The position numbers were made by a program, and so were the translations under genes. Below the pieces are notes generated by a model. The model saw only the letters and a program-made list of their open reading frames with translations. It was not told where the DNA came from and did no database searches. Of a stretch of DNA of 64,000 nucleotides, positions 2,908-52,069 are shown piece after piece (position 1 is the first letter of the stretch; every line of letters starts with the position of its first letter). The stretch is from Oikopleura dioica (taxonomy: Eukaryota > Animalia > Chordata), in assembly GCA_907165135.1 (NCBI GenBank), contig OU015568.1, positions 4,526,001 to 4,590,000 of the forward strand. Reading direction: 5' to 3'.

Positions 2908-3957
2908 TTAAAATTGAGGGTTTAGCAAGGAATGAAATTGTCGATCAAGGTTAGACATTCCCTCGTATCTTTTGAAATTTGTATGAAAAATGATAAGATA
3001 TGCAGTGTATCCTACCGTTAGAAAAGAAACAAGCCTAGAAAAGAATTTTGAAGAAATGAAAGTGTTGGATATTGTCAGAGCAATAAGCATGATCACCAGT
3101 CGGGAAAAAGTGTCCTCTAAGAAATATTTAAAACCACCCCAAAAACGCCAGTAGAAGACCTCCCGGGTCTCTCTAAATTCACGGTTTATAACAGGCAACA
3201 AATACCATGAAAGAGCAATCTTCACAAGTAAATCACAAGTAAAGCTTTCAGAATTGTTATTGTTAATGCAATCATCTTTTGTTTTGGCCGGTTTATCTCC
3301 AATTCTAACGCCATCTTGTCTATTTTTTCTTCCAATGCCTTGATGGTCAAGCTTTTTGTCTCATTTTCATTTTCTAGTACCGAAGCACGCTCTTTTAATT
3401 TCCGAACTTCCCACGGAAGTTTTTGAAGTTCAAGAAGCTCAGACCGGATTGATTCCAAACGACAGTCGATAATTTCTTCAATTTTATTTCCAGATAGCTC
3501 TGAAAACTCTGAAACTTCAAGCCCACTTGAGATAAATGAAGGTCCTACCCGTTTTATCGGAATTGTCGTTTTCTTTGTCGTAGCTAACAACGCTTTCAGA
3601 AACGGAAGGTATGCTCGGTGATGCTTTTGGGCTTATGAAACTCATTGCCTAAAAGTGTTTCTCTTTTTTTACTTGAAATATGCGAGTTTGTTCAGTCATA
3701 AAAATGGTTGACTCATTTGAAATCGGTACGAGGGTAAACATAAAAATCAACAAAAAGAATTTTGGTGCTTTATTGAAAGAAATATTTAATTTCTCATTAT
3801 TTTTTTTGCAATACGTCGATTGAACAAACTTGCAATTAACTGATTTCATTCGGTTCTTTTCTTCCTTTCGAGCTTTTATGTATGCTTGTAATCTTTGATT
3901 TTTCCGCATCGACAAAAGTTTGCTCTCAATTGCTTTTTGTCGAAGTGAATGATTCAA
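2908..3957 (-). CDS. Hypothetical coiled-coil protein with C-terminal hydrophobic segments (exon structure uncertain)
   Basis: Three adjacent same-strand ORFs. Plausible GT-AG introns link the first two; a heptad-like stretch (LESIRSELLELQK...LENENETKSLTIKALEEKIDKMALELE) is followed by hydrophobic segments. No family recognised. Confidence 0.35.
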
Positions 3958-35863: not shown

Positions 35864-38800
35864 ATGGAATCCGACTCGGCTAAATTTTTAGACGACCAGG
35901 AAGTTGAAATCAAAACGAGCTGGAAAAGATGGCTGGTTTTGAGCATTTTTGCGAGTTATTCGCTCATGTCCGCGTTTCAGTGGATTCAGGAAATTGAATA
36001 ATCGGCCCGTTTTTTTTTATTTTTTGGCGATTTTTTTTCAATTTTCCAAGTTTATGATTTTACCGGATATCTTCACTGAGTTCTACGGAATACCCGAGAC
36101 TGGGCTTGCCAACCTGTGTAGAAAACCTGAGTCAGGGTCAGAAAAGCGCGAGCCGACTATTTACTTACGATCTTTCAGACCCTGACTCAGGTTTTCTTCA
36201 CAGCTTGCCGAGCTCAGACCGAAGACAACCCTCGCCTGGACATCGATGATCTACATGGCAGTATTCCTCCCGTTAGTTTTTCCATCAATGGCGATCATTG
36301 AAAATCTTGGTCTCCGGAAATCCGCTCTTTTGGACTCTTTTTTCAACGCTCTAGGCGCCGGTCTAAAAATCTTCGCTGCGAAGCCCGATTTATTTTGGCT
36401 CGTCATCCTCGCTCAATTCTTCAACGCCGTTGCCGAAACGCTTGTTTTGCAGTTGCCGCCGAAAATTGCCGGATTGTGGTTTCCGGCGAATGAAATTTCG
36501 ACTGCCACGAGCTTGGGGGTCTTTGGCAATCAATTGGGGATAGCGCTGGGGTTTTTCATCCCCACTTTGTTTATCAAAGGAAACCGGTGCTGAAAATGTC
36601 ACGATTTTTTTTATTTTGAACGCCCGAAGTCGTGTAAATACGTCAAGAAAAATCGTGGGCGGGATCGTATTTGTGCAGTTTTTTTTTTGAACTGCTGGTT
36701 TTTCAGAATTCAAAATGGCTGACTCAGATAAACAAGCTTTGATATTTTTTGTAAATGGAAAGAGAATTGAAGATTTCGATGCTGATCCTGAAGAAACTCT
36801 TTTGTATTACTTGAGAAATCGATTGCGACTATGCGGAACCAAGGTTTCTTTCTGTTATCAAAAAAGCCTTGAACAATTCCTTTAGTCTGGGTGCGGAGAA
36901 GGGGGTTGTGGCGCATGTACTGCCATGATTTCCAACTATCGAAACGGCAAAGTCATCCACCGCGCTATAAATGCCTGTTTAACCCCCCTTCCCTTCATTC
37001 ATCTCTCTGCCATCACAACAATTGAAGGAATCGGGTCGACAAAAACCAAGCTTCACCGAATCCAACAAGTCCTGATCGACAATCACGGAACTCAATGCGG
37101 CTTTTGCACTCCTGGAATTGTCATGTCTATGTATGCTCTTTTGAGAAACGAGAAATTGCCGACAGAAGAGATGATAAAACGCGCGCTCCAAGGAAATTTG
37201 TGCAGATGTACAGGATACAGGCCGATTCTACAAGGCTTCAATTTTGAATTCGCCGCAAAAAATCAGGAAGAAAAAAGAGAGAATGGTCCCTGTGCGCTTG
37301 GAGAAAGCTGCTGCAAGAACAAACCACAATCATCATCATCGCCCGAAAAAGCGGTCGAAATCAACAACGACTTCATCCCAGAAGATCCCACTCAGGAGCC
37401 AATTTTTCCTCCAGAACTCAAGCTTCTCAAGACGACCACTTCATTTACCATCAATGGCCCAAGAACAACCTGGTTTGCTCCCACCGAATTTGTTCCCCTA
37501 ATCCGGTATTTGAAGGAAAATCAAGAAGTGCGAATCATCTCTGGCGGCACGATTTGCGCGCTAGAATCGAAATTTGAGCAAAAATTTCGACCAATTCAGA
37601 TTTCTACCGCCGCTGTTGAGGAATTAAAAACAATCTCAATGGACGAATTTTCACTTAGAATCGGCGCTGGGGCAACAATAACAGAGATAAGCGAATTCAT
37701 CCAAGGAGCGAAGGAAAAGAATCAAATCCTTGACTCGATTCTGGAAAGCGCAAAGTGGTTTGGTGGGGAACAAGTTCGAAATGTCGCAACAATTGGTGGC
37801 AATATCATGAGCGCTAGGGCTACTTCTGATTTGACTACCATTCTTATGGCTGCTGGCGCTCAAGCGAAATATACGACATGTGAATTGACAGACCATGGCA
37901 CTGTCTATTTCCACGATATTGATCTTGATAATAATTTCTTTCCTGGGGAAAGAATAGCCGCGATTCCAAAAGACTCCGTTCTTTATGAAGTCAATCTTTC
38001 ATTATGCCCGAAAACAGCGTTTTTTCGATCTTACAAGCAGTCTAAAAGAAAAGAAAATGATACAGCCATTGTCAATGCTGCTTTCTTCCTTGATTTCAAC
38101 GAAAATTCAAGCACTATAAAAACGCTACGGATGGCATTTGGCGGCGTTGCGAAAACTGTTCGACTCGCAAAATGTGCCGATTCTTTTGTTGGTCGATCCT
38201 GGGACGAAAAATTATTGAAAGACGTCAGTGAAGCGTTGCAGGCAGAATTTGATGTTTCCGACTTTCCAGTTGGATATGTTGCTTACAGAAAATGTCTGAT
38301 TACATCTTTCTTCTTCAAGTTTTTCATCACTGTTAATCATGAGCTTGGTGGCGAAAAGAACCAAATTGGACTCGAGCGCGGTTCTTTTTCGAGCATCAGG
38401 TGTGCTGATGTTGATCACTCTCTCGCACCAGTTGGAAAATCTACTCGAATAATTTCCGCAGCAAAACAAGCCACTGGAGAAGCACAGTTTCTGGACGACA
38501 TGCCAAAACTCGATAGAGAGTTGTATTTTGCCCCGGTTTTATCGCCCAAAGCGCATGCTAAAATTCTCTTCGTTGATTTCACCGAGGCAGATGCTCTCCA
38601 AGGCGTGGTGGGTCACGTGACATGGGAAGATGTAAGAGGTGGCAATGAAATCAATGACGAAGAGTATTTCAGAAAAGAGACTGTAACTTCCACTGGTCAA
38701 ATCATTGCAGGAATTCTTGCGGACGATGAAAAAACTGCTCGAAGAGCAGCAAAACTAGTCAAAATTGAATACGAAGTGATCGAGCCGGTAGTTGTGACGA

Positions 38801-41800
38801 TCGAAGACGCGATTAAATTCGATAAATATCTTCCCAACGCTCCTTCGATCCGCCACGATCGAGGAGACCCAGATGCCGCTTATGAAAAAGCAGAGCACAG
38901 GATTGAATCATCCGTGCGATTCGGGAGCCAGGAGCATTTTTACCTCGAGACACAGGGCAGTTATTGCATTCCGATCGACAATTCGGATGAATTTCACGTC
39001 ATTTCAAGCTGCCAAAATATCCTGGAAGGTCAATCTTCCGTTGCACGAGTTCTTAATGTGCCGATGAATCACGTGAAATTCTCAGTAAAACGGCTTGGTG
39101 GAGGTTTCGGAGGAAAAGAAATGCGGTTCAGGCTGCTTTGCGGGGGCGTCGCCGTCGCGGCGCAGAAATTCAACCGACCGGTTAGATGTGCTTTGGACAG
39201 AGAGGAAGACATGCTCTACTCTGGAGGTCGCCACTCATGCTTGTCCAAGTACAAAGTTGGATTTGAAAGCAGTGGTAAAATCACCTCCGTCTCCATCGAT
39301 GGCTACGCGAACGCTGGCTACTCGGAAGATGTCTCCATCGGCATGCTTTCCCGCTACATCGACCACTGCTTTAACTGCTATCACTTTCCGAACTACAGGG
39401 TCGTTGGTCACTGCATGATGACAAACACAAGATCGAATACTGCTTTCAGAGGAACAGGAGGGCCACCGGGAATGCTGGTCGCGGAGGATATCGTGCATAA
39501 AGTCGCGGATTACCTGAAAATGCCAGTTGATGATGTTCGAAAAATAAACATGTTGAAGAGAGGCGATCGACTCCCATACGGGCCGTGTGATAAACAGCTT
39601 TTGGACGAGGATCACATTTTGGAAGAAATCTACGAAAAAGCCAATGAGTCGTTCAAAATCGATGAGCGCCGAAAAATCATCAAAAAATTTAATGAAAAGC
39701 ATCAATTCACGAAGAAAGGAGTCGCCCTGGTTCCGATCATGTTTGGACTTGGCTTCGGACTCAAACATCTTAATTCTGGAGGAGCTTTGGTCCAAATTTA
39801 CACAGGTAAAATCAATCTTGAAATCTCTGCTCGGCATCATTTTAGATGGCAGCGTGCTTGTCGCTCATGGTGGCATCGAAATGGGACAGGGCTTGTATAC
39901 GAAAATGATTCAAATCGCTTCAAAAGAGCTGGGAGTGCCGATGGAAAAGATTCATACTCTAGAAACCTGCTCAACGACTGTTCCAAACGCAGCGCCAACT
40001 GCTGCTTCTGTGTCTTCAGATCATATCGGTTTCGCGGTGAAAAAAGCTTGTGAAGAATTAAGGGAACGCCTCTCGGTAAAGAAAAACCAAAATCGATGAT
40101 AAAGATTTCAGGTTATTGATGAAACGGATCCATTTATAACCTGGGAGGAAAAAATCAAGAAAGCGTATCTCCAGCGAATCAGCTTATCCGCCTCAGCATT
40201 TGGCCAGTCTTCAAGAATCGAGTGGGATCCAGTGACTAGAATAGGGAGGAAATATAATTACTACTGCTACGGAGTCTGTGGCTCAGAAGTCGAAGTTGAT
40301 TTGCTCACTGGAGACCATATCGTAATCCATTTGTTTTTGTCTTTTTCATATATTTCCGTAGATCCGGGAAGTTGAAATTCTCATGGACATTGGAAAATCG
40401 CTCAACCCTGCTGTCGATATCGGCCAAATCGAAGGCGCTTTTATCCAAGGAGTTGGGCTCATGACTCTTGAAGAAGAACTATTCAAGCCTGAGGGCGAGC
40501 AACTGACTAAAGGACCCGGAAGTTATAAAATCCCTGCTTTTGGGGATATTCCAGAGAAGTTCAAAGTGTCGCTTTTTGACAAAACGAGTAACAGACACGG
40601 CCTTTTTCATTCAAAAGTTAGATCTCTTCGACGCAAAATATAATCAAAACATAGGGCTGTGGAGAGCCGCCGCTGTTGATGGCTTCTAGCGTGCTTTATG
40701 CAATTCGAGATGCAGTAAGGCAAGTTAATAATGAAGAAATTATGAGCTGGAATTCACCTGCAACGGCTGAGCAAATCCGATTGAGTGTTAATGATTCTAT
40801 CGCGAAGATGGTAAAAAAATTTTGAGTTGGACAGTTGAAAATCAATGATAATTCAGGCGGGTCAAAGCACTGGCGAATCTGAGAGTGTGATCAGAAGATG
40901 AAATTCATGAAAAAGAATTTTTTGTTTCTAAAAATAAAATTTCTATTCAAACAGAAAAAATAAGAAAACTAATTATTTTTTATTTCGTGACATTTTCAGC
41001 ATCGGTTAAAAAGGCGTGTTTTTGGAGCAAGACTTCTATTTTGACCAGAACTCAACTTTAATTCAAAACTCATCCACCCTAAACTTTGACGAAACGGGAA
41101 AAGAAATCCAAATTTTTCTTGCGTCCGTGGCCGGGGTCTGCATCCTCGAGTTTTTACTGGTCATCTTTCTCTTCCCTTCGAAGCCGCAGTTCTTCGCAAA
41201 TAAGAGCTCTTTCGAAAAAGCTCAGAATTCAAAAGAAAAAGAAGGCCCCTTATCAGGCTTTCTTTCCATTCTCAAACGGCTTCTCATTCACAAATCTTAC
41301 ATGCTTCTTTTGGTAAATTACGGCTTGATCGTCGGGGTCTACTACGCCGTTTCAACCCTTCTGAGCCAGCTTCTGTCGCACGAAGCAGCTACAGTAGGAC
41401 TGATGGGCGCGCTCATGGTCATAACAGGACTCTTCGGATCCGTCCTTGGCGGAATCTTATTGGACAAGACGAAAGCATTCAAGAAAATTTCGCTCGTCTT
41501 CTATGTCTTCACCTTGATTTGCTGCTCGATTTTCACCGGAGTTCTGATGCTTGGAAACAAAGTGACTGATTTCGTTCTTATTGGAGTACTTGGCTTCTTC
41601 ATGACTGGATATTTACCGATTGGGTAAGTTTCAAAGAAGGATTTTTTTCCATTTTTAGCTTCGAATTCGCTGCGGAGTTGACGTACCCAGAGCCAGAAGC
41701 AATTTCTTCAGGTCTTTTAAATTGGGCAGGAATGACTTTTGGACTTGTAACGACGCAAATCTGCCAAATCGTCATTGTAAAATTGGTAAAAATCGACTGA

Positions 41801-41935
41801 ATTATTTCTCCTAGATAAATTAAGGGTATATTTCCGACATGCGGAATTATGATTGGAATGCTTGTAATTGGACTGTGCTTACTTTTTGCGATCAAGGAAG
41901 ATCTTCGAAGACATCAAGTTGAACAAAAAACTTGA
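35864..41935 (+). CDS. FLVCR-family (SLC49) MFS transporter, interrupted by the XDH-bearing intron
   Basis: [48 protein letters not shown], then after 41014 [28 protein letters not shown] and KEDLRR. Predicted introns: 35990-36050 (GA), ~36098-36217 (GA, MITE), 36580-41013 (GA) and two GT introns. Confidence 0.92.
36100..36217. mobile_element. MITE of the CTGTGTAGAAAACCTGAGTCAGG family making up almost all of FLVCR intron 2
   Basis: Arms ctgggcttgccaacctgtgtagaaaacctgagtcaggg and ccctgactcaggttttcttcacagcttgccgagctcag. Related copies or halves lie near 35645, 52970, 53500, 55545, 58080, 62320 and 63815. Confidence 0.85.
36581..41009. mobile_element. TIR-bounded 4.4-kb element carrying the XDH gene; no transposase
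   Basis: aaccggtgctgaaaatgtcacga (36582-36604) versus tcgtgacattttcagcatcggtt (40985-41007) is a 23-bp inverted repeat with 1 mismatch; aaagg lies on both flanks (36576-36580, 41010-41014). Confidence 0.75.
36715..40901 (+). CDS. XDH: Xanthine dehydrogenase / aldehyde oxidase family molybdo-flavoenzyme, apparently complete (7 exons)
   Basis: 2Fe-2S motifs [11 protein letters not shown] and [22 protein letters not shown] motif [10 protein letters not shown], Moco motifs [32 protein letters not shown] and GEPPL. Six short GT-AG introns, stop at 40899-40901 and an AATAAA near 40932. Confidence 0.96.
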
Positions 41936-42288
41936 GTTCTTATAAAAAGTTCAGTTTTACTTCCTAAAGTTCTTTTCTACATAATAAAATAAGCATAAAA
42001 GAAGAGAAAGTGCGAGAAACTTTTGTTAAGTGATATAATTTGAATTATACGACTCGCGAGAAGTATCACAGCTTCGCGTACGTAATCATTATTCTTAGTG
42101 TCAAATAAAAATTAACGGCGACTTTTGCATGATTACTTATTTTCTACGTCGACTAAGCTTTTATCTTCTGCTGCCATAAAAATAAAATATCGTTAAATTA
42201 ATGAGAAAAACCATTTTTATACGACAGTGTCTTCTGAGTCGGATAAGCTTAGTGTGACAAAAAACTTTCATAGAGATTTTCCGTGAAA

Positions 42289-44755
42289 ATGAAGCTTTAC
42301 CTTCTTTTTACCGGAATTCTTGCAAAGAGAGAATCTTCTAGAGCTGAATTCACCACTGACTTCCCATTCGACTTGATCACGGATTACACGACCGAGCTAC
42401 CGGGTGATTTAGTGACTTATTTCGCAGCTGATTCTAGCACTGATTCCCAAACCGATGAAGACTTAGAGCAAGAAGGCTTTACTACTGACTATCCCGCAAA
42501 CATCACCTCTTCTTTTGAAGCGCCAATATCCTCAACAACTATTCCTACTTCCACAAGCTCAACAGCAACATCAACAACAAGAACCACAGCTACATCGACA
42601 TCCGAATCTTCGACCAGAAGTACAATTTCTACAACGACCTCTTCTGAAGGTTCTTCGGGTGATTCTTCGGATGACTTTACCACTGAGTATCCATACTTTG
42701 ACACAGAAGACTTTACAACTGACTTACTCGTGGATTTCACCTCCCCTTCAGAAGAGCTTTCGTCTTCAACACTAAGTACCTTGATGTCAACTTCAACATC
42801 CACAACAAGATCGACAGCAAGCTCGACAACTGAGCCCCAAACTAAAACCACGACAAAAGAATCTTCAACGGAGTCAACGACAGAGTATCAAGGAACAGTC
42901 TCCACCGCGGATTACACTTCTACTTCCGAAAACTTTCATACGTCCACAAGCTCAACAGCAACGTCAACAACAAGAACAACAATGACATCAACAACTGAAA
43001 ACTCTTCGGGCGATTTTACTACTGACTATCCATACTTTGGCTCAGGAGATTATACAACTGATTCCCTTGAGGATTTCACCTCTACTTCAGAAGAGCCATC
43101 ATCTTCTACATTTAGTACGTTGACGGAAACTTCAACATCATCGACAGCATCTTCAACCCTTGCTTCAACACGATCACCACCCACTTGTCTTCAAAACACG
43201 GCCTTTGGTGACATTTTCGTCTGGGAAATCGCGCCTGGCATGGACAAGCCATCTCCTTATTCAAATTTCGAGCATGAAATCGCAAACTTTGCCGGAGACA
43301 CTCAAGATTGTCAGCGAGAGTGTGCAAGTTTCGCCGGCTGTTACAAGGAGCGGACTCTCGAAAAAACGTCGTAAATTTCTGATCTTAAAAATCATAAGCC
43401 GGAAGTACCATGAATGAGTCCAATAAAAGCTCCATCATGATGTTGACAACAATATTTGCGAGCTTCGTGGTGATGAAATTACTTTCTCAGAAGACGGAAA
43501 TGACTATGCGGTTTCTGGTAAATCCTGCGAATCCAGCTATGAGTGGATAGATTACGCGGTGAATCTCGAGTTTTATTGTCTTTTTTCGACTTCGCAAACT
43601 CCTGAGGATTTTCTCGCTATGCTGAATAGCTATAATCCACCTGGCTGGGTTACTTACACATCTCTTGGTTTTGCCTATTCGTACGAGTTTGCATTCGAAT
43701 TGGCTACAAACGTACCTTGGATTCAGCCAGCTGGACCAAATCAGATTTGGATCGCATTCGTTGGCGAACTTCATATACGATTCGAAAACTTTAATTTCTC
43801 CCGAAAGCGCCGATTTGCCATCCCTGAGGTTGAAGTTGACAGCGTCATTCAAGATGTCGCTGCCAACGCAACCACTGAGTTCCAATCGTCCATCGATGCT
43901 GGGAACGCTACTGTAGCTATTACAACAAATACAACCGTGGAAGTTGAAGAAGTCGCGCCAGTTATTGATCCTTTAGATCCGACATCTACACTTGCTCCAA
44001 CAACAACAAGCACTACAACCACCTCGACAACTACAACTACAACTACCACGACAACAGCAACTACCACTACTTCTACGACCACAGCAACATCAACAACCAC
44101 CACGACAATTACAACTACGACGACAAGAACGACAACTTCTACGTCATCAACTACTACAAGTTCATCAACAACGACAACAGCGAGCACAACTACCATTAGT
44201 TCAAACTCTACTGGGACGATTCCTCAACTAGGAAGTCTTTATGACTTGGGATTTTAATCAAAGCATCTGATTTATTTCAATAATAATTATCATCTTTTAT
44301 AACTTGTACAGAAAAATCCCGACAAAAGACACCCTTGAATTGGTTTTATCTGATGCCGTGGCCGATCACCCAAACAACAAACTGAAAAATTTCTATAAAA
44401 TCAAGGCTCGTTTCGGCTGGTTCAACGATTACGTCGAAACTCCCTGCGTGAATCCCGCCGGTGCTGGTCCAGGAAAAGGTCACTTACAGCCAAACATTAC
44501 TCTCTTGAGCAAAACTCAAAGACCTTTATAAAAGGAATCGCACCAGACTTTGTTGACCCGACGATTTCAATAAACGATCCTTGTCTTGCCGCCAAAACTT
44601 TCTACAATGCTCTCCTTGGCTTCTACGATGATTTCGTCTGCCTTGACAGAATCAGAAACAGAGGAATCACGAAAAACGTTGACAACAAACTCGACCAAGC
44701 AAAAGATCTTTTCAACCGAATCTTGAGAAAGACAACCTGTCCTCTTCTTGTTTAG
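42289..44755 (+). CDS. Secreted mucin-like protein: Ser/Thr/acidic repeats, PAN/apple-like module, SEA-like domain with RKRR, Thr stalk and Cys-containing C-terminal domain
   Basis: Signal peptide MKLYLLFTGILA, FTTDY repeats, CQRECASFAGCYK|LHHDVDNNICEL joined by a GA-AG intron (43348-43429), FSRKRRF, a Thr tract and terminal exons ending ...TTCPLLV. Confidence 0.8.
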
Positions 44756-50332: not shown

Positions 50333-52069
50333 AACAGCAGGATCAACAACAAGAACAACAATGACATCAACTACTGAAAGTTCTCCGGGCGATTTTACCA
50401 CTGACTATTCCTATTTTGCCTCGGGAGACTATACAACTGACTCACTTGAGGATTTCACCTCTACTTCAGAAGAGACATCATCTTCTACATTTAGTACCTT
50501 GACGGAAACTTCAAAATCATCGACAGCATTTTCAACCGTTGCTTCAACACGACCACCACCCACTTGTCTTCAAAACACGGCGTTCGGTGACATTTTCGTC
50601 TGGGAAATTGCACCTGGAATGGACAAGCCATCTCCTTATTCAAATTTCGAGTATGAAATCGCAAACTTTGCCGGAGACACTCAAGATTGTCAGCGAGAGT
50701 GTGCAAGTTTCGCCGGCTGTTACAAGGAAAGGACTCTCGAAAATACATCGTTACTTTCTGATCTTAAAAATTATAAGCCGGAAGCACCATGAATGAGTCC
50801 AATAAAAGCTCCATCACGATTTTGACAACAATATTTGCGAGCTTCGTGGTGACGAAATTACTTTCTCAGGAGACGGAAATGACTATGCGGTTTCTGGGAA
50901 ATCTTGCGAATCCGGCTATGAGTGGATAGACTACGCTGTGAATCTCGAGTTTTATTGCCTTTTCTCGACCTCCCAAACTCCCGAGGATTTTCTCGCTATG
51001 CTGAATAGCTATAATCCACCTGGATGGGTTACTTACACATCTATTGGTTTTGCCTATTCTTACGAGTTCGAATTCGAATTGGCTACAAACGTACCTTGGC
51101 TTCAGCCAGCTGGGCCAAATCGGATTTGGATCGCATTCGTTGGCGAACTTCATATACGATTCGAAAATTTTAATTTCTCCAGAAAGCGCCGATTTGCCAT
51201 CCCTGAGGTTGAAGTTGACAGCGTCATTCAAGATGTCGCTGCCAACGCAACCACTGAGTTCCAATCGTCCATCGATGCCGGAAACGCTACTGTAGCTGTT
51301 ACAACAAACACAACTGTTGAAGTTGAAGAAGTCGAGCCAGTGATTGATCCATTGGATCCAACATCAACACTTGCTTCAACAACAACGAGCACTACCACCA
51401 CCTCGACAACTACAACTACAACTACCACGACCACAGCAACTACCACTACTTCTACGACCACAACAACATCAACAACCACCTCGACAATTACAACTACGAC
51501 GACAAGAACGACAACTTCTACGTCTTCAACTACTACAAGTTCATCAACAACGACAACAGCGAGCACAACTACCGTAAGTTCAAACTCTACTGGGACGATT
51601 CCTCAACTAGGAAGTCTTTATGACTGGGGATTTTAATCAGAGCATCTGATTTATTTCAATAATAATTATCATCTTTGATAACTTGTACAGTAAAATCTCG
51701 ACACAAGACGCTCTTGAATTGGTTTTATCTGATGCCGTGGCCGATCACCCAAACAACAAACTGAAAAATTTCTATAAAATCAAGGCTCGTTTTGGCTGGT
51801 TCAACGATTACGTAGAAACTCCCTGCGTCAATCCCGCCGGTGCTGGTCCAGGAAAAGGTCACTTACAGACAAACATTACTTTTTCTGAGCAAAAATCAAA
51901 GACCATTATAAAAGGAATCGCGCCAGACTTTGTTGAACCAACGATTTCAATAAACGATCCTTGCCTTGCCGCTGAAACTTTCTACAATGCTCTCCTTGGC
52001 TTCTACGATGATTTCGTCTGCCTTGACAGAATCAGAAACAGAGGAATCACGAAAAACGTTGACAATTAA
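50333..52069 (+). pseudogene. 5'-truncated duplicate of the PAN/SEA mucin gene with a premature stop
   Basis: Begins mid-repeat (homologous to 42954) with no signal peptide. AAC AAA has become AAT TAA at 52064-52069, removing the last ~20 codons; otherwise it is colinear with copy 1. Confidence 0.75.

Follow-up and report, generated by a model that had tools for sequence, protein, structure and literature searches.

Evidence for an old, insertion-derived GA–AG intron holding a complete xanthine dehydrogenase gene within an FLVCR-like transporter gene of Oikopleura dioica

In a 64-kb window of the PAR (pseudoautosomal region) chromosome of Oikopleura dioica OKI2018_I69 (the whole stretch of DNA analysed, with its first letter as position 1), an FLVCR-like transporter gene of the major facilitator superfamily (MFS; 35864–41935, assigned from its open reading frames and alignment to relatives) encloses a complete xanthine dehydrogenase (XDH) gene, all features of both genes being on the + strand. 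We consider it likely, at a probability of about 0.6, that the 4434-nt segment separating the two parts of the transporter is an old, insertion-derived GA…AG intron (intron 3, phase 1; 36580–41013), with the entire XDH gene inside it and with a terminal stem that probably aids splicing. The window was compared with metagenome contigs (Tara among them), the JGI contig L012 and an outgroup genomic contig, L016. Two Tara metagenome contigs, L007 (left junction) and L006 (right junction), are of the same Okinawa-type lineage as the window, and L002 and L014 represent a second lineage with the nested gene, at a synonymous divergence (dS) of about 1.0 from the window. The site lacking the insert is represented by L001, L012, L003 and L004/L005 together with the outgroup, stand-alone XDH orthologues by L009, L010, L011 and L013, and the locus of an XDH paralogue on chromosome 2 by L015.

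The borders of the intron follow from the reading frame and from the relatives. After ATC AAA G (36579), the transporter frame reaches a TGA at 36591–93, and the downstream frame is shut by a TAA at 41007–09; because this stop closes the frame and the AG at 41012–13 is the sole usable one after it, the exon must resume at 41014. On the left, the direct repeat AAAGG (36576–36580), found where empty sites read ATCAAGGGC or ATCAAAGGG, provides the first intron base with its last G; on the right, AAAGG (41010–41014) contains the acceptor AG and provides the first exon base with its last G. Since AAAGG is repeated on both flanks, six equivalent cut pairs would give an identical mRNA, and only GA (36580)…AG (41013) combines a G at the start with an AG at the end. 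The donor (AAAG/GAAACC) and acceptor (AAAAAG/G) have the AG/GAA donor context and the AG acceptor of O. dioica GA–AG introns, whose consensus comprises an upstream AG and a downstream A (AG/GAA; PMC7072748). Non-canonical introns make up ~11% of OKI introns, and the median intron length is 49 bp (PMC8008620). The predicted spliced product, ATC AAA GGC GTG (IKG/V), agrees with the empty sites of the relatives. Thus, the frame break at 36579 and its resumption at 41014, the GA…AG gap of 4434 nt and the recovery of this junction when the element is deleted with one AAAGG, all proposed in an earlier sequence-only reading, are borne out by the frame analysis, by the relatives' IKGV and by the uniqueness of the boundary pair. 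The same reading took AAAGG for a target-site duplication (TSD) that supplied the donor G and the acceptor AG; the repeat is present on both flanks but does not directly abut the inverted repeat at the insert ends, from which AAAGG is offset by 1 nt at the left end and by 2 nt at the right end (in L006, 1 nt), and the target site, judging from the empty sites, already had AAAGG or AAGGG. Two other splice sites were considered and rejected: a GC donor at 36589 (IKGNRC/V) would add NRC where relatives read IKGV, and TTTTCAG at 40999, as a transporter acceptor, is followed by an in-frame TAA or TGA in every lineage.

Between these borders lies a whole gene, flanked on each side by an exon of the same host gene, the two sides belonging to a single MFS protein as judged from the uninterrupted P0004. 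The latter is a single 338-aa open reading frame reading …PTLFIKGVYYSS…, and on L001 the corresponding exon has introns on either side and the DNA sequence TTC ATC AAG GGC GTT. The nested gene (36715–40901, with its stop at 40899–40901) has six exons, five short GT–AG introns, all seven Pfam XDH domains and a poly(A) signal, AATAAA, at 40933–40938. Alignment to bovine XDH motifs shows that the equivalents of Glu802 and Arg880 (bovine numbering) are kept, with the GEPP motif of Glu1261 present in the next exon, and the gene is therefore of the XDH rather than the aldehyde oxidase type. No space is left for a transposase inside 36580–41013. Hence, the description of this insert as a complete same-strand gene with its own introns and poly(A) signal and with no transposase proved correct. 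The encoded protein (P0020) is 100% identical to g9688 of the OKI2018_I69 PAR chromosome and has a 60% identical paralogue on chromosome 2. The g9688 model is 3′ truncated, ending in intron read-through (…VRSLRRKI) and missing the last two exons, including the GEPP catalytic Glu.

Upstream of the XDH coding sequence, at 36620–36665, by-eye comparison revealed a motif, GCCCGA..GTAAATACGTCAA..AAAA..GTGGGCG, common to L009 and L013, which is likely the gene's own promoter. Its TACGTCA and GTGGGCG elements recur at 3085–3135 of L009 and 215–265 of L013, so that the motif accompanies XDH between contexts, and in L009 it lies inside a 21-nt imperfect palindrome. In addition, TTTTTCAG occurs 8 nt before the XDH ATG (36700–36714), with L009 arranged alike; it resembles a spliced-leader trans-splice acceptor, and XDH mRNA could also be excised from the host pre-mRNA.

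Comparison across lineages indicates that the intron and its gene are a gain. The XDH site is an uninterrupted ATC AAG GGC GTT in L001, L012, L003 and L004, and the outgroup L016 reads ATT ATC AAA GGG CCT with no intron, so that presence and absence of intron 3 are found between close relatives with the empty site intact. In L002 and L014, the XDH 3′ end is followed by ACGTGACATTTTCAGTACCTGTT, then by (G/A)AAAAG/GCGTT and then by exon 4 of the transporter. Since these contigs share the nesting, it predates a deep split. When exon 4 was placed in a tree with other FLVCRs as the root, the four nested rows grouped together (92/87) within an Oikopleura clade (100/99) in which the empty rows are basal; because the nested clade is derived and the outgroup is empty, we take the intron with its XDH gene to be a gain, and these comparisons point firmly to insertion into a formerly continuous exon. 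An insertion origin was thus upheld when related lineages were checked for empty sites, the site being uninterrupted in all of L001, L012, L003, L004/L005 and L016. An assembly chimera, which the sequence-only reading had named as a possible artefact, was rejected, since L006 and L007 reproduce both junctions independently and the nesting recurs in the independent contigs L002 and L014.

Selection on exon 4 suggests that the transporter is spliced across XDH. Between the nested lineages, this exon has a ratio of nonsynonymous to synonymous divergence (dN/dS) of 0.10–0.12 at a dS of about 1. Its first 95 codons contain no ATG in frame, encode a transmembrane helix and have a dN/dS of 0.07–0.12, and so would have to be translated as a continuation of the upstream exon. 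Because these ATG-less codons are under purifying selection, splicing across XDH is implied, and there is strong indirect evidence that the 4.4-kb insert is removed as GA…AG intron 3.

The ends of the insert can pair. A 23-nt inverted repeat has its left arm (AACCGGTGCTGAAAATGTCACGA; 36582–36604, identical in L007) 2 nt inside the donor and its right arm (TCGTGACATTTTCAGCATCGGTT; 40985–41007) 6 nt inside the acceptor. The single DNA mismatch becomes a G·U pair in sense RNA, giving pairing at 23 of 23 positions, and the duplex has a calculated energy of −40.1 kcal/mol compared with −13.6 ± 5.1 kcal/mol for equally spaced random pairs from the window. The coordinates and pairing of the repeat noted earlier, with its one mismatch, were thereby reproduced. 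In the L002 lineage, the right arm is identical to that of the window at 19 of 23 positions and has an invariant 14-nt core (CGTGACATTTTCAG, unchanged throughout the L002/L014 lineage), while the flanking untranslated and intron sequence is barely alignable; under neutral decay at a dS of about 1, a match at 19 or more of 23 positions has a probability of about 2–3e-4. Three changes affect the outer right arm: two, facing a G in the left arm, are C/U transitions and exchange G–C and G·U pairs, and the third predicts a compensating change in the left arm. The arm may have been kept while its surroundings diverged because the stem aids splicing. Moreover, all three non-GT introns of the transporter gene have pairing ends (z = −2.8, −3.2 and −12.3), as against none of the six GT–AG introns scored in the transporter and XDH genes. 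Matches to the arm core at 12 of 14 positions (GACGAAAATGTCAC) occur at 43208–43221 and 50587–50600 (−), in the two copies of a nearby 2.55-kb duplication, and are probably due to chance or to a splice-acceptor-like motif. No Rfam family matched in 35500–42300.

XDH itself occupies another locus elsewhere. An orthologue with 79% amino acid identity stands alone in L009, L010, L011 and L013, adjoining a cysteine-dioxygenase-like gene and a C2H2 zinc-finger gene. These four contigs lack transporter exons and arms, no further repeat brackets the gene, and their flanks are not similar to the window; the chromosome 2 paralogue (L015) likewise has neither arms nor a bracketing repeat. The XDH orthologue, whose location by synteny had been suggested, lies elsewhere, and the XDH flanks in L009 have no synteny with those in the window. 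Over the 59 C-terminal XDH residues that can be compared, there are 3 differences between the window and L002 and 6–7 between L009 and either of them, in agreement with the transporter tree. Because both contexts share the upstream motif, the XDH unit would have moved together with its promoter.

The rest of the transporter gene is a mosaic of canonical and non-canonical introns. Exon 1 (35864–35989, with the ATG at 35864; open reading frame and alignment to L001 exon 1) is followed by a non-canonical GA…AG intron (intron 1, 35990–36050) whose ends, GAAATTGAA and TTCAATTTTC, pair (z = −2.8). The intron at the identical position in the distant lineage L001 also begins with GA, and intron 1 is therefore old. 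Exon 2 (36051–36101) has a 3′ boundary uncertain by ~3 nt, L001, L012 and L008 being uninterrupted here, and it is followed by the MITE-like (miniature inverted-repeat transposable element-like) non-GT intron 2 (36102–36224), recognised from its 45-nt inverted arms (36100–36144 and 36173–36217) and from its absence in relatives. Intron 2 is present in the Okinawa-type L007 and absent from L001, L012 and L008, and where exactly it is spliced is ambiguous by 3 nt (36099–36227). Exon 3 (36225–36579) is 89% identical to its counterpart in L001 and ends in ATC AAA G; the open reading frame at 36246–36593 matches MFS_1. Downstream of intron 3, exon 4 (41014–41623) extends from GC GTG to …GYLPIG, and two GT–AG introns with unpaired ends (intron 4, 41624–41658; intron 5, 41786–41824) border exon 5 (41659–41785; from the P0006 sequence) before the last exon (41825–41935; P0006 C-terminus …VEQKT, stop TGA at 41933–35). 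P0006, which covers the C-terminal part of the transporter, matches g9689 of the OKI2018_I69 PAR chromosome at 100% identity, and that model comprises just the last 186 aa of the protein. An in-frame Met in exon 4 (HKSYMLLL, 41298–41303) occurs only in lineages with the nested XDH gene, those with the empty site having HKSFILLL, and may be a coincidence or a back-up start for a product consisting of the C-domain only. Other introns in the same region are lineage-specific. L003 and L004 (positions 1–70 of each) have a phase-1 intron, ending in …cccaccctag, 18 nt upstream of the XDH site, and the tagggtagc at the start of L004 may be an inverted end; L008 (311–531) has an extra GT intron after …FNALGAG found in no other sampled lineage. 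Intron turnover within this single transporter exon is very high.

The comparisons show that, in the ancestor of the Okinawa-type and L002-type lineages, a 4.4-kb XDH unit with the 23-nt inverted repeat became lodged in a continuous exon at ATCAAAGG^C, and purifying selection on both sides shows that the transporter kept its function. We propose that the whole insert is removed from the pre-mRNA at AG/GA…AG/G, a known non-canonical class of O. dioica, with the arms forming a 23-bp stem in the sense RNA that may bring a weak GA donor and a distant acceptor together across a nested gene whose acceptors and poly(A) site are its own. The arms probably derive from a transposon, since arms and direct repeat resemble the terminal inverted repeat (TIR) and TSD of larvacean MITE-derived introns. 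Several observations weigh against this proposal. The direct repeat stands 1–2 nt away from the arms, and a second copy of the inverted repeat, sought at up to 3 mismatches (0 expected by chance), was found neither in the 64-kb window, to which this search was limited, nor in the fetched loci, so that the genome-wide search suggested in the sequence-only reading was carried out for the window and gave no second copy. The left junction of the L002 lineage was not found by protein search, cluster look-up or a scan of JGI data. The right-arm core, GTGAC-ATTTTCAG, also resembles a branch point, pyrimidine tract and AG, so that ordinary 3′ splice signals could explain the conservation of the arm, and the 23-bp stem could even mask those signals. 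Finally, word-indexed and exhaustive HMMER searches yielded neither a transcript spanning the two halves nor a full-length FLVCR protein that joins them, and the OKI annotation splits the transporter gene, presumably since predictors cannot handle a 4.4-kb GA–AG intron. The top long match in the full-length search, P0140, was rejected as an unrelated tandem fusion.

How XDH came to lie in the intron can be pictured in two ways, both of which fit, with two steps slightly favoured and other insertion routes, such as break repair, covering the remainder. The two-step history, a tenable though tentative account, would begin with a short MITE-like element that created a hairpin-closed intron, into whose loop the XDH unit later relocated amid the genome scrambling typical of O. 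dioica; the addition would be tolerated as the stem makes splicing insensitive to intron length. The first step has a parallel in the same gene, where 480 nt upstream the MITE-like non-GT intron with 45-nt arms, absent from relatives, shows that such a step occurs, and where every non-GT intron has pairing ends. The presence of XDH with its own promoter motif in both contexts likewise speaks for it. What tells against this account is that it needs two events within about 100 bp and that an intermediate having arms but no XDH was not found, every sampled lineage having both or neither.

Pack-type TIR transposons (Pack-MULE and similar elements) contain host coding sequence between TIRs and no transposase. 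They usually hold gene fragments, have TIRs identifiable with an autonomous family, are abutted by a TSD and occur in many copies. The insert described here resembles them in the host coding sequence between inverted repeats and in the missing transposase, and differs from them in its whole gene, in its offset direct repeat, in termini that fit no known family and in its single copy within the window. By analogy, a non-autonomous TIR transposon that had captured XDH could have hit the transporter exon in one step, duplicated AAAGG and been spliced out from the start, a course of events that we judge unlikely. It would account for the 23-nt terminal inverted repeat exactly at the insert ends, the 5-bp direct repeat on both flanks, the clean empty site in relatives, the different XDH locus in another lineage and the scarcity of sequence between the arms and the XDH unit, and TIR/TSD introns are known in another larvacean. 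However, a second repeat copy is missing from the window, and neither stand-alone XDH (L009 and L013) nor the chromosome 2 paralogue (L015) is flanked by arms, as mobility of the cargo would lead one to look for. Nor does the direct repeat adjoin the TIR, and the termini (AACCGGTG…) with their offset 5-bp repeat have no superfamily signature known to us. The element would, moreover, have been immobile for a dS of about 1 with an arm conserved in a way unlike that of a dead TIR, and a 4.4-kb gene that brings its own acceptors and poly(A) site is hard to splice across accurately from the outset. Thus, of the earlier view that a Pack-type transposon carried the gene, the part that stands is that an insertion made a gene-carrying intron, the mobile-cargo mechanism being unproven in view of the single repeat copy in the window and the direct repeat that stops short of the arms. 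A piggyBac-like alternative reading of the ends (CCG…CGG with TTAA) fails, because TTAA occurs in neither form of the empty site (ATCAAGGGCGTT and ATCAAAGGGCCT).

It is very improbable that the nested state is ancestral and that the empty exon of L001 type arose by precise cDNA-mediated intron loss, with XDH surviving elsewhere. Intron loss through cDNA recombination is well documented in general, and L001 has few introns in the region, but the outgroup lacks the intron, the nested rows are a derived clade and a loss would also require an independent earlier relocation of XDH with its promoter. Least credible of all is a transporter that is split or dead, its halves expressed separately or reduced to pseudogenes with no splicing across XDH: the 186-aa C-terminal fragment (P0006) that alone represents the gene in the OKI2018_I69 annotation, the failure to find a spanning transcript and the in-frame Met (SYMLLL) restricted to nested lineages would fit, but in every contig the frames of both halves remain open, the dN/dS of exon 4 is about 0.1 over a dS of about 1, including the 95 transmembrane-helix-encoding codons before the first Met, and a gene predictor is expected to fail on a 4.4-kb GA–AG intron.

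The insertion-derived intron with a terminal stem, which we prefer, shares features with several known systems. Closest to it are the MITE-derived non-canonical introns with TIRs and TSDs of Fritillaria borealis (Henriet et al., 2019, as reviewed in PMC11282704), an animal of the same class. On that review's account, these also have non-GT sites, TIRs, a short direct repeat at the exon borders, lineage-specific positions and a permissive major spliceosome; as summarised there, however, they are short, multi-copy and mostly AG–AC or AG–AT, whereas the present intron is GA–AG, 4.4 kb long, single-copy as far as seen and occupied by a complete functional gene. Introners of Micromonas, dinoflagellates and others (Huff, 2016; Gozashti, 2022; cited in PMC11282704 and PMC13326754) similarly become precisely spliced introns on insertion, a splice site coming in part from the target-site repeat and presence varying between close relatives, and the 23-nt repeat provides the TIRs at intron ends by which introners are recognised. 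As portrayed in these two sources, introners occur in many near-identical copies and carry no host gene, in contrast to the transporter insert, known from one copy in 64 kb. Within O. dioica, the GA–AG class has the same AG/GAA donor context and AG acceptor, but its typical introns are ~49 nt long, and PMC7072748 and PMC8008620 describe no terminal stems or nested genes. Euglenid nonconventional introns also combine non-canonical borders, base-pairing near the ends that unites them and TSD-like border repeats, although they belong to an unrelated lineage, are probably excised without the spliceosome and have short pairing motifs (PMC3935182; PMC11282704). Nested protein-coding genes of other animals can likewise lie whole, on the host strand, within a host intron (PMC3488318); these are normally assumed to enter pre-existing introns, whereas relatives of the present transporter have no intron at the site. 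The ingredients, larvacean non-canonical introns with inverted ends and nested genes, are thus known, and it is their combination that is new, not a category.

The origin of new introns, and the way a host gene tolerates another gene nested on its own strand, are long-standing questions. Here, filled and empty alleles of a single site are available from closely related cryptic lineages of a model animal that can be cultured, and the 23-bp element is defined and open to mutation. The locus also exposes a systematic annotation error, the OKI models splitting the transporter and truncating XDH as predictors miss such introns. A bolder and rather speculative extension is that the 23-bp stem is a device by which O. 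dioica splices a host gene across a complete same-strand gene, perhaps joining or shielding the host RNA halves when the XDH poly(A) site is cut ~30–50 nt before the right arm, and that the whole unit possibly arrived in one mobile step; if true, arms and XDH arriving as one unit would constitute a route for whole genes to move into coding exons of a scrambled genome. On the reading preferred here, the locus would demonstrate that an intron can be made out of part of a coding exon by a 4.4-kb gene unit, with end pairing as what may license the change.

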